Sequence record: PP496438.1
Length of the DNA stretch: 64,000 nucleotides
Strand: one strand, 5' to 3'
Positions 12,818 through 16,905 of the stretch are shown here, in pieces; within the stretch, counting starts at the first letter, position 1; the number at the start of each line of letters is the position of its first letter. The notes beneath the pieces were generated by a model. That model did no database searches. It had not been told where the DNA came from and saw only the letters and a list, made by a program, of their open reading frames with translations. Position numbers and translations under genes: made by a program.

Positions 12818-13108
12818 TTACTCGACGGACACGGTGACGAATGTTACGCCGTCGTATTCCCTTAGTCGCTTGCAGAATTCATCTGCAATTTCCGCCAAGG
12901 GTACGAAGAGCATATCACGGGCCACTGTTTCTACCGCGAAGAAAGACGCATCCGTACGTACGTATATGCGATTGGTCGCTGACTTCGAGGAAGTTTCGTC
13001 TTCACACTCCGTACATACGGCAGTCGAAGATCGGAGCGTGACGGTATACGACTTCGTGCCTTCCGGCTCAAGCCCTTGACTACTTCCTACCTCTTGTGTA
13101 TCACTCAT
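12818..13108 (-). CDS. Hypothetical protein (96 aa)
   Basis: Overlaps the recombinase stop; contains CTEC. Confidence 0.55.
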   Translation of the reverse strand: MSDTQEVGSSQGLEPEGTKSYTVTLRSSTAVCTECEDETSSKSATNRIYVRTDASFFAVETVARDMLFVPLAEIADEFCKRLREYDGVTFVTVSVE

Positions 13109-14657
13109 CTTCTACTTCCTCTTCTTCCTCATCCAGCCCAGCGCCGGACAAGTGGTTGAAATACAACTCCAGTCCACGGCCCGAAGAAATCTGTGCGGCC
13201 AACACTTCACGGATGTCGAAGTCTTTCACTTCCCATTCCGCTGTCAGTTCCTTACGCGCCTTGCCTTTGAACAGAACCAGTTGCTTCAGGTCTTCCCACG
13301 TCAAGTCCAGCTCAGGGATAGACTTGCTGTCGGCGTGCAGCGTAAAGGTCTTCATGTTGCCGGACAACTGGCCGGTCATCCGCAGGTAGTACCACGTATC
13401 CCAGACAGGATCGAAGCCACGACCTTTACCGGTGGCGTCGCTGATCCACAAGCGCTGCCAGATTTCAAGGTTGTCAACCCCGTACTTGTTCTTGATCGCC
13501 TTCATGTTGATAAAGCGATAAGTGTCTGTACCGGACGCCCCTACACTTGGCTCTTCCATCGTGGCGCCGGTGGCCGAGATGAAGTCTGGGCAAACGCGAG
13601 GAGTCTGCATGATCCGGGCACCAGTGGCGTGCTTGATCGCCATACCGCCAGGTTCGTAGTTCGGGTTGCCCATTCGCATACCCGGATTCTGACGGATCTG
13701 GTTGATCGACACCACGGTCGCCATCTTCTTACGGAGTCGGCCCCACACCTTCTTGATGTGTTTGGAGTGCATGCGCGCATCCAGAGCCATACCCCGGCTA
13801 CCATCACCGTCTTCCCCTTCGTCTTCCTCGGTGGTCATCGAGGCGATGGAGTCGAGCAGGATCAGGCACTGCATCATGCCGCCGTTGGGCGACTTCATCC
13901 GCAGCTTGCCCTTGTAGATGGTATACTTGCCCTTGAACTTGCTCATGTTCTCTTTGGTGCGGTCATACAGCAGATACCACTCGCCGTTGATATGCACCTT
14001 GTCGGGCAGCTGTTTCAGGATCGACGACATCACCTTGTAGAACTTCTCGCCCGAAGATTCGTTGTAGTAACGAATGCGAGGCGGGATGATGTAGTTACCT
14101 TTGTCGTCCTTCACGCCGAACATACGCTTCATGCTGATCTTGATGCCTTGAGCTTCGAGCATGTTGACGATGTAGTCTTCGGCACCGGTGTTCTCATAGT
14201 CCCACCAAAAGGACATAGGAACGCCAGCCAAACAGATGGAACCCAACCACGACATCAGGTTGGTGGACTTGCCCGAGCCTTCTGGCCCTGAGAAGTTGTA
14301 CCAGCCGCCGGGATAGATACCACCCGCCAGCATAAGATCGGTGCACAGCATCCCCGTGGACACTCGCCCTTCCCGGAGGATCTCCAAGTCCGATACGCCT
14401 TGGACGATGTTGAAGTGTTCCTCCACCTTGTCAATCATGGCGGTGACGCCCATCATGTCAAGGATTTCGTCTACCATGTCTTCGCGGGACTTGGCAGGTG
14501 GTTCAGCTTTTGCAGCGGCTGCTTTGTTGGCCCCACGCTTCGCGGGTACCTTGGCGTCCTCGATCAGCTTTTCCGCAAGTGCGCTGACCTTTTTCTTGGT
14601 TGCTACCGTCGCAGTCTTGACGGGTTTAGCTTTAGCTCTGGTAGTGGCTGCTGCCAT
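13101..14657 (-). CDS. recA: RecA/UvsX-family recombinase
   Basis: STGMLCTDLMLAGG, Walker A GPEGSGKST, Walker B LILLDSI, INQIR and EPGGMAIKH motifs; basic N-tail and acidic C-tail. Confidence 0.9.
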   Translation of the reverse strand: MAAATTRAKAKPVKTATVATKKKVSALAEKLIEDAKVPAKRGANKAAAAKAEPPAKSREDMVDEILDMMGVTAMIDKVEEHFNIVQGVSDLEILREGRVSTGMLCTDLMLAGGIYPGGWYNFSGPEGSGKSTNLMSWLGSICLAGVPMSFWWDYENTGAEDYIVNMLEAQGIKISMKRMFGVKDDKGNYIIPPRIRYYNESSGEKFYKVMSSILKQLPDKVHINGEWYLLYDRTKENMSKFKGKYTIYKGKLRMKSPNGGMMQCLILLDSIASMTTEEDEGEDGDGSRGMALDARMHSKHIKKVWGRLRKKMATVVSINQIRQNPGMRMGNPNYEPGGMAIKHATGARIMQTPRVCPDFISATGATMEEPSVGASGTDTYRFINMKAIKNKYGVDNLEIWQRLWISDATGKGRGFDPVWDTWYYLRMTGQLSGNMKTFTLHADSKSIPELDLTWEDLKQLVLFKGKARKELTAEWEVKDFDIREVLAAQISSGRGLELYFNHLSGAGLDEEEEEVEDE

Positions 14658-14676: not shown

Positions 14677-14721
14677 AAATAAAAATGGGGCACCGACCAG
14701 CGAACCGGCAGATGCCCCATT
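14677..14721 (-). terminator. Intrinsic terminator
   Basis: Stem AATGGGGCA/TGCCCCATT plus UUUUUAUUU on the - strand. Confidence 0.7.
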
Positions 14722-14737: not shown

Positions 14738-14914
14738 TCACTTACGTGACTTGCGACGCTTCGCTTTGACCGTACTCACCGCCTTGAAGCCGGGCTTATT
14801 GTAGTCCGGTCTGGCATCGGCGGCGAGGTTGAACAACCCCCCGCTGCTCGGGTCAAAGCCTTTGGCGGATCGGCCCTTCGGCTTACCGCCGCCGGACTTA
14901 CCGCCGGCCTGCAG
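14738..14914 (-). other. In-frame 58-codon basic extension downstream of the UGA of the acidic repeat protein (candidate readthrough region)
   Basis: Hand translation: LQAGGKSGGGKPKGRSAKGFDPSSGGLFNLAADARPDYNKPGFKAVSTVKAKRRKSRK-stop; no ATG; terminator 17 nt after its stop. Confidence 0.55.
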
Positions 14915-15718
14915 TCACTCGATGTCGAGTTCGATCTTCAGCTTTTTGGCCGCTTTGACGATCTTGTCCTTGCCCGCTTCGACAACTTTCTCGACGATGG
15001 CGTCGGTGTCGTCCTTGCGGCCGATGGTGATCTTCAGCGCTTTGGCCAGCGACTTCAGTTCGTCTTCGTCCAGCTCTTCGAGGGCGTCTTGGAGTTCTTC
15101 TTCCTCCTCTTCTTCCTCCTCGTTTTCTTCTTCCTCTTCTTCGCCGTCGCCCAGTTCGATTTCCAGCTCTTCAGCTGCGTCACGAACGTCGTCTTCGTCT
15201 TCTTCGAGGATCAGCGCGATGATCGCGTCTTCGTCGTCTTTCTTGCCGACTTTGATTTCCAGCTCTTTGGCCAGCGCTTTGAGGTCTTTCAGGGAAACTT
15301 CACCGAGTTCGGCTTCGAGGTCGCCTTCCTCTTTTTCGTCTTCCTCTTCCTCTTCCTCCTCGTTTTCTTCTTCCTCTTCTTCGGATTCCTCCAGTTCGAG
15401 GTCGATGTCCAGCGCGTCGGCCGCGTCTTCGATGTCCGACTGCGAAGCACCTTCGGCCAGCGCTTCGGCCATGGCTTCTTCGTCAGCGCCCTTGGCGAAC
15501 TTGACCTTCAGCTTCTTGCCCAGCTGCTTCAGCTCGTCTTCGTCCAGATCGGCCAGCGCTTCGATCAGTGCTTCCTTGTCGTCGCCCTTGTCACCGCCGC
15601 CTTCTTCGTCCAGCTCTTCCGCCAGTTCAGCGATTTCGGCGAATGCTGCCTTGGCCTTTTTGTCCTTGGTCGCTTCTGCTGCTGCTTCGGCCAGTTCGAT
15701 GATTTTTTCAACAGACAT
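14915..15718 (-). CDS. Highly acidic protein with three Rho_N/HeH-like helical repeats separated by poly-Glu tracts
   Basis: Repeats LADLDEDELKQLGKKLKV / LGEVSLKDLKALAKELEI / LEELDEDELKSLAKALKI at about 80-aa period; a 33-nt identical repeat at 15111-15143 and 15351-15383. Confidence 0.8.
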   Translation of the reverse strand: MSVEKIIELAEAAAEATKDKKAKAAFAEIAELAEELDEEGGGDKGDDKEALIEALADLDEDELKQLGKKLKVKFAKGADEEAMAEALAEGASQSDIEDAADALDIDLELEESEEEEEENEEEEEEEDEKEEGDLEAELGEVSLKDLKALAKELEIKVGKKDDEDAIIALILEEDEDDVRDAAEELEIELGDGEEEEEENEEEEEEEEELQDALEELDEDELKSLAKALKITIGRKDDTDAIVEKVVEAGKDKIVKAAKKLKIELDIE

Positions 15719-15816
15719 GGTACATCCTCTTTACGGGTAGGGTGCCAACTAAGGCTCTTTAATCAACGGGGCGCCGTTTGGCTCACCCCGTTATACGAAT
15801 GATTTACAGCGGTCTT

Positions 15817-16905
15817 TCAGCGACGACTTGAACGCGAGGATCTTGTCGAAGTTTTCTCTTTGTCGCGGCTGGTACGGCTGCTGCGTTCCGACCGGCTCGA
15901 CGTTGATTTACCGGACTTCTCCGGCTTATCAGCTTTGACCTTGGTTTTCTCGCGGCGGGAAGTACGCTCTGGCTTCTCTTCACGGCTACTGCTACGCTTG
16001 CTGCCTCGCAGTGGACGATCAGATTCACGCTTGCGCTTGCTGCCCCGGTCGAGATCCTTACCGGCCTTCTCTTCCTCTTCCTCGACGTCCTCAGCATCAG
16101 GAGCCTTGGATTCCAAACTTGCCACTTCCTTTACAGCATCTGCGTAGGACATTGGCTGGTCGAGATTACCGAGGATGTCCCACTGCAGATACTTCTGCTC
16201 GGTACGGGACAGCGGAGTATGGCCTGTGCTGGAATCCAGCTGCACGTCATACATGTCCGACGCCGACTTCGCGTCTTTATCGTAGGACACCAGAATGTCA
16301 CGACCGAACTCGGGATCACCCAGCGGCATGATCTGCACGCCCTGCTTGGTTTTCACCTTGTTGGTGTCTTCCAGCTTCTTGATCTTGCCAGCGATACGGT
16401 CAGTAACCCGCATTACGCGAACCGGGGTCCACGAGGCGCTGTTGATGTTGTCCACGAAGCCGGTCTTCTTCTCGTTGGCCGAGTGCTCGGGGACACGCTT
16501 CGGCTCGCTGTCTTGCAGTTCCCGAACGATGACCGGCACGTAGTAGTACTTCTTGGTCTGCTTGGGATTGCTGATCTCAGCGAACGGGCAGTCGATGGTG
16601 GTGTCGAAGGTATCCGCATCCCGGTCGAAGTTCAACGGGGTATGCGAGATATCGAACTCACCCTTCGGCGTAACGATCTTGATCGAGTACACCACATCTG
16701 GAATCGGATCACCGACAATACGCACAGCGATGAAAGCACCACCTGGCGGGTATTCGATCATCTTCACTTTCTTGTTGAAGTACACCCGCTTGCCGCCGGT
16801 CTGGCCAGCATTGGTCGCACCGAAACCTTTACGAGCTGGGGCAGCACCAACGCTACCACCTCCGCCAGTACGGCTACGACCGGTTCTTGCACTGTCACGT
16901 GCCAT
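15817..16905 (-). CDS. T4 gp32-like single-stranded DNA-binding protein with basic low-complexity tails
   Basis: DCPF, YYYVPVIVR and LGDPEFGRDILV resemble gp32-family motifs; located beside the recombinase. Confidence 0.6.
   Translation of the reverse strand: MARDSARTGRSRTGGGGSVGAAPARKGFGATNAGQTGGKRVYFNKKVKMIEYPPGGAFIAVRIVGDPIPDVVYSIKIVTPKGEFDISHTPLNFDRDADTFDTTIDCPFAEISNPKQTKKYYYVPVIVRELQDSEPKRVPEHSANEKKTGFVDNINSASWTPVRVMRVTDRIAGKIKKLEDTNKVKTKQGVQIMPLGDPEFGRDILVSYDKDAKSASDMYDVQLDSSTGHTPLSRTEQKYLQWDILGNLDQPMSYADAVKEVASLESKAPDAEDVEEEEEKAGKDLDRGSKRKRESDRPLRGSKRSSSREEKPERTSRREKTKVKADKPEKSGKSTSSRSERSSRTSRDKEKTSTRSSRSSRR

Follow-up and report, generated by a model that had tools for sequence, protein, structure and literature searches.

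A conserved UGA stop followed by a basic in-frame tail points to readthrough in an acidic protein gene of a Pseudomonas jumbo phage

The locus lies on the minus strand of a 64,000-nucleotide stretch (hereafter the window) that megablast places in Pseudomonas putida jumbo phage vB_PpuM-SKa-4 (PP496438.1, 202 kb; window base 13000 is record base 75000). Eight sister phages from the same P. putida collection are 93–98% identical over this region, and all are jumbo myoviruses of ‘cluster G3’ in the paper that describes them (bioRxiv 10.1101/2024.03.26.586772), which, as far as it was searched, does not mention the gene discussed here. The local gene order is a sigma factor, two small genes, a single-strand DNA binding protein (SSB) with a long basic Ser/Arg/Lys-rich C-terminal tail (15817–16905), a hyper-acidic repeat protein (14915–15718; SKa4_00098, annotated as hypothetical), a 257-nt gap, and a UvsX-like recombinase of the RecA family (13101–14657). 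A 303-aa Ser-rich ORF lies antisense to the acidic gene on the plus strand (14829–15740); it is longer than the real gene and was picked by a naive longest-ORF rule, but is a mirror artefact of the GAA/GAG-rich coding strand.

The acidic gene encodes 267 aa with 107 D+E against 33 K+R (net charge about –74) and ends ATC GAG TGA CTG CAG, its TGA stop occupying 14915–14917. The same frame then stays open for 58 sense codons (14741–14914) before a second TGA (14738–14740), which is followed by T, with an in-frame TAA six codons further on. The extension contains 15 K/R, 3 D and 10 G; it has no ATG, and in-frame TTG and GTG occur only at codons 27 and 46, respectively. It consists of a Gly-rich start, a conserved core (14792–14857; codons 20–41, from FDPSSGG to NKP) and a basic C-terminal end (14741–14767; codons 50–58), in which 7 of 9 residues are K/R. 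A GCCGG-N8-CCGGC inverted repeat is found at 14891–14908, starting 6 nt after the first TGA. An intrinsic terminator (11+5 bp hairpin and a U-run; z = –3.7) lies at 14679–14721, 16 nt after the second stop, closes the transcription unit and is invariant in the nine Pseudomonas phages (SKa-4 and its sisters). Every sequence statement made in the original prediction, which had proposed that a programmed UGA readthrough appends a basic tail to the acidic protein, is thus confirmed.

Taken alone, the open frame is not beyond chance. In a crude gene set of the window, 9 of 61 genes (about 15%) have at least 57 open in-frame codons after their stop, and TGA is an ordinary stop here, ending about 36–40% of ORFs. 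The inverted repeat is not part of the minimum-energy fold, and the region folds no better than shuffled sequences (z = –0.8). All nine Pseudomonas phages keep the TGA and the open frame, but they are so similar (99% mean column identity) that their roughly ten substitutions are too few to show selection (dN/dS 0.47).

We therefore looked for more distant relatives. tblastn of the acidic protein and of the tail against GenBank phages returned only the nine sister phages at significant E-values. However, a hit of the 57-residue tail at E = 9 in Vibrio phage vB_VcorM_GR7B, which would normally be ignored, lies at the syntenic spot, about 100 nt upstream of the start of the recA gene of that phage, in unannotated DNA. 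GR7B and GR11A are the nearest GenBank relatives (UvsX 48–49% identical) and have the same gene order. In both, the homologous acidic repeat gene ends GAC TGA AAG, the frame stays open for 44 and 50 codons and ends TAA TAA, and a terminator follows at once. With UvsX as the anchor, two metagenomic contigs were found to carry the same arrangement. In L014 (UvsX 53% identical) the gene ends GAA TGA GCA and is followed by 79 open codons, TAA and a terminator. In L015 (UvsX 46–49% identical to SKa-4 and 62% identical to GR7B) it ends GCT TGA AAA and is followed by 41 open codons, TAA and a terminator. None of the eleven phage records examined annotates the tail.

The five tails are homologous. Their core reads FDPSSGGLFNLAADA in SKa-4, YNPSSGGFFNEAPDA in GR7B, FNPSAGGLLQQATNA in L015 and DSKRGGFFNLPKD in L014. 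The Gly-Gly pair, one Ala column and two Lys columns are invariant in 6 of 6 rows of the alignment, and every tail ends in a run rich in K/R. BLASTP of the SKa-4 extension against that of GR7B gives E = 8e-8, two further pairwise comparisons give 5e-11 and 2e-4, and similarity starts within two residues of the stop. A recombinase-binding FxxA motif was considered for the tail (FNLA in SKa-4, FNEA in the Vibrio phages) but was dropped, since it is not kept in L014 or L015.

The tail evolves as protein. For GR7B against GR11A, pS is 0.64 and pN is 0.20, giving a dN/dS of 0.16; between the distant lineages synonymous sites are saturated (pS 0.74–1.0), while pN is 0.3–0.54. The G+C content of the tail ranges from 39% to 64% with the peptide kept, and all length differences are whole codons. 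Frame 0 is the only one of six frames without stops in all six sequences compared, every other frame having stops in at least four of the six.

The stop is selected to be UGA as well. TGA is present at this position in the nine Pseudomonas phages, GR7B, GR11A, L014 and L015, although the codons on both sides of it differ in every lineage, so that no nucleotide motif explains the TGA. In the four AT-richer loci none of 18 neighbouring genes ends in TGA (15 TAA, 3 TAG), yet the acidic gene does in 4 of 4. Three related contigs carry the acidic repeat gene without the tail; there it ends TAA TAG (L017) or TAG (L081 and L082), and the terminator follows directly. In a neighbour-joining tree of UvsX the tail-bearing lineages form one clade and the tail-less ones its sister. 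The TGA is therefore one old state, not several independent gains, which has been retained over a divergence at which a neutral TGA would be expected to have drifted to TAA.

Further searches did not extend this set. A first IMG/VR scan with a three-sequence UvsX alignment found nothing; a wider IMG/VR scan and a metagenome scan, checked with positive controls, returned only distant relatives with UvsX at most 45% identical, in which SSB sits directly before RecA and there is no tail motif. A word-indexed search with the acidic protein was swamped by poly-Glu proteins and gave one distant homologue (P0027; L023:4001-5161, JGI contig Ga0502774_0000167) in a different gene context. That gene also ends in TGA, followed in the same frame by six Gly/Ser/Ala codons and a 108-aa Cys-rich ORF with its own GTG; this may be chance (one in three for the frame) or a second readthrough candidate, and is uninformative for the present case. 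An exhaustive phmmer search with the 58-residue tail against 1.84 billion representatives found no protein with the tail fused by a sense codon. Its two hits are a low-complexity giant protein and a 918-aa metagenomic leucine-rich-repeat surface protein (P0124), four copies of a repeat in which resemble residues 20–47 of the SKa-4 tail (E = 1.6e-4); since the matching part is not shared by the other tail lineages, we read this as a repeat-inflated chance match.

Taken together, these data indicate that the acidic gene most likely makes two products, and we put the probability of in-frame decoding of the UGA at about 0.75. In this view, most ribosomes stop at the UGA and release the 267-aa polyanion, while a minority decode it, most likely with the near-cognate tryptophan tRNA of the host, and continue for 58 codons to the next stop just before the terminator, giving a 326-residue isoform with a glycine-rich linker, a conserved short motif and a Lys/Arg-rich end. 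Each extension ends in a strong stop (TAA TAA, TAA or TGA-T) directly before a terminator. Our analysis establishes that the UGA and the in-frame tail are conserved across a whole clade of roughly 200-kb myoviruses, that the tail evolves as a protein, that it cannot be started independently in at least two lineages, and that lineages without it use UAA or UAG; the decoding event itself, the inserted residue, the ratio of the two forms and the role of the tail are inferred from sequence comparison alone. The core of the original interpretation is supported by the comparison of orthologs that had been named beforehand as decisive, whereas its proposed signals are not supported and its functional part remains hypothetical, so that overall it is partly supported.

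With respect to signals, the original prediction had pointed to UGA followed by C and to the downstream hairpin as stimulators. The base after UGA is C only in the Pseudomonas phages and is A, A, A and G elsewhere. Downstream folds are neither conserved nor significant (z from –0.4 to –1.9), and Rfam gives no match. The hairpin as a stimulator is therefore rejected, although such elements are not universal for readthrough and their absence lowers the expected efficiency more than it lowers the claim. In E. coli the near-cognate decoder of UGA is tRNA-Trp, and misreading is favoured by A after the stop (Engelberg-Kulka 1981, as cited in PMC5289835); three lineages have that A. The main tension is that in P. 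putida PaW85, the parent of the strain used to isolate these phages, a dual-luciferase reporter gave only 0.08% UGA readthrough, against 12% in E. coli MG1655 (PMC9481147), so that unstimulated leakage would give very little product. A very small dose of the long form may be enough, the local context may raise readthrough, or infection may change termination, and our data do not decide between these possibilities. Concerning context, the residue before the stop is D or E in four of five lineages, as is the one before that in four of five, and work by Isaksson's group reportedly showed that the last residues of the nascent chain modulate UGA termination in E. coli.

Of the alternatives, the one that survives best, though it is unlikely, is that the tail is a separate small gene translated from its own start or by reinitiation after termination at the UGA. 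GR11A has an in-frame ATG at codon 11 behind an AAGGG stretch, GR7B has a GTG at codon 9 and L014 a TTG at codon 14, all upstream of the conserved core. Yet L015 has no in-frame ATG, GTG or TTG at all, and in SKa-4 the first one (TTG, codon 27) lies inside the core. Conservation begins right after the stop, and in every lineage the tail is in the frame of the upstream gene with a single stop between them, despite several whole-codon indels. The stop is always TGA, which an independent gene would not require. Reinitiation at the CUG following the stop, which the original prediction had listed as an alternative, is refuted, since the corresponding codon is AAG, AAA or GCA in other lineages.

Selenocysteine insertion directed by a hairpin just downstream is more doubtful still. 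UGA is the selenocysteine codon, P. putida has the selenocysteine machinery, and small hairpins start 6 nt after the UGA in SKa-4 and L014 and 2 nt after it in GR11A. However, these hairpins differ in place, size and sequence and are absent in GR7B and L015, none of the hairpin regions folds better than shuffles, there is no Rfam match, and glycine codons (GGN) explain G+C-rich local pairing. Equally improbable is that the region is an untranslated 3′ end, or a decaying former C-terminus cut off by an old nonsense mutation, open by chance or conserved as RNA. The frequency of such open frames in one genome, the low host UGA leakage and the fact that in the nine phages the region is as well conserved at the DNA level as the terminator speak for it. 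Against it are the persistence of amino-acid similarity at saturated synonymous sites and over the range of G+C content, the single open frame and the lack of a conserved RNA fold; a dead tail would have collected stops and frameshifts over this divergence. A recent nonsense mutation, the other alternative raised originally, does not fit, because the TGA is ancient and shared. Finally, although some large phages of other hosts recode stop codons, a suppressor tRNA or changed code making the gene simply 326 codons long can be dismissed: ARAGORN finds no tRNA gene in the window or in the other 138 kb of the SKa-4 genome, about 40% of its ORFs end in TGA, as does the SKa-4 extension itself, the known hosts use the standard code, and no in-frame TGA was seen inside conserved domains of the other genes read.

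No family in Pfam (no hit at E up to 1), NCBIfam, PHROGs or the PDB matches the acidic body or the tail. An AlphaFold model from a two-sequence alignment (pTM 0.29 overall) predicts three helical modules (pLDDT 72–90), each with a helix, a loop of about ten residues and a helix, separated by disordered poly-Glu linkers (pLDDT below 50). Foldseek finds nothing in the PDB; the best neighbours among viral models (BFVD) are proteins with Rho-factor N-terminal-like (helix-extended loop-helix) motifs from Gordonia and Brevibacterium phages and a Marseillevirus, at a sub-threshold E of 0.03–0.5, which we treat as a lead only; the acidic protein is far more acidic than DNA-binding members of that kind. 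The original prediction had envisaged a polyanionic DNA mimic or chaperone and a stoichiometric charge switch between the two forms. No similarity to known acidic DNA mimics, such as Ocr or ArdA, came back from these sequence and fold searches, which do not exclude charge mimicry without homology.

The net charge of the body is –29 to –101 in different lineages, and that of the tail is +6 to +12. The acidic linkers expand and contract quickly: two contigs with UvsX proteins 99% identical differ by about 77 residues in one Asp/Glu run of the acidic protein (L081:2015-2476 against L082:2051-2743; 153 against 230 aa). In more distant relatives (NCTB, Yoloswag, and many IMG/VR and metagenome contigs) there is no separate acidic gene. 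There the SSB itself carries a long tail of alternating acidic and basic blocks, ending either in the classical acidic-hydrophobic tip (DDDIPF, DDDIPY) or in a Lys run; such charged SSB tails were seen at L010:1030-2025, L012:2104-3402, L013:2057-3319 and upstream of RecA in L025–L038, all loci of relatives. The SSBs of SKa-4 and GR7B end in basic runs too. A basic tip is therefore a recurring feature of this module, and the readthrough form would give the polyanion the same kind of tip. From this we infer that the tail may act as a tether or address label, a short interaction motif plus a basic end that would bind DNA or polyanions, placing a small fraction of the acidic protein on DNA, on itself, or on a partner of the replication and recombination module. 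A bolder and unlikely possibility is that the UGA works as a dosing valve for a charge-driven assembly, in which the rare isoform would nucleate or cap an electrostatic assembly around replicating or recombining DNA. Given host UGA leakage of only about 0.08%, the phage, or the very acidic nascent chain, would then have to raise readthrough locally, which would be a new bacterial readthrough stimulator.

To our knowledge, programmed stop-codon readthrough in bacterial viruses is documented chiefly in small RNA phages, and it would be a rare way for a DNA phage to make two forms of one protein. In RNA phage Qbeta, the precedent named in the original prediction, a leaky UGA at the end of the abundant coat protein gene is decoded by a normal, near-cognate host tRNA, giving the minor A1 protein with an added C-terminal part from an in-frame extension. 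Here, on comparative evidence only, the genome is that of a 202-kb double-stranded DNA myovirus, the gene sits in the replication and recombination module and not among virion genes, and the extension is short, basic and predicted to be flexible rather than a folded domain. Tailed phages make C-terminally extended isoforms, such as those of tail assembly chaperones and capsid variants, in a set ratio by programmed frameshifting at a slippery site (reviewed in PMC5009743); here the extension is in the zero frame behind a stop, and no slippery site is needed. In fungi and animals, short conserved extensions behind a UGA serve as targeting signals in peroxisomal forms of metabolic enzymes and in MDH1x (PMC4207609, PMC5133446) and were detected by the same comparative signature, but with a known UGA-CUAG context and known signal receptors, whereas the context here is not conserved. 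If confirmed, the case adds a recoding event that gene callers miss, kept across hosts as different as Pseudomonas and Vibrio, gives a natural test case for UGA decoding in a host where leakage is measured to be very low, and points to an unstudied acidic partner of SSB and UvsX.

The UvsX/RecA genes of two relatives (L015:453-3962 and L082:3001-5766) are interrupted by inteins with homing-endonuclease domains (LAGLIDADG hits). In the SKa-4 genome all 241 annotated features are protein-coding genes, and outside the window the record annotates QueC-like, QueE-like and GTP cyclohydrolase genes, which suggests 7-deazaguanine modification.
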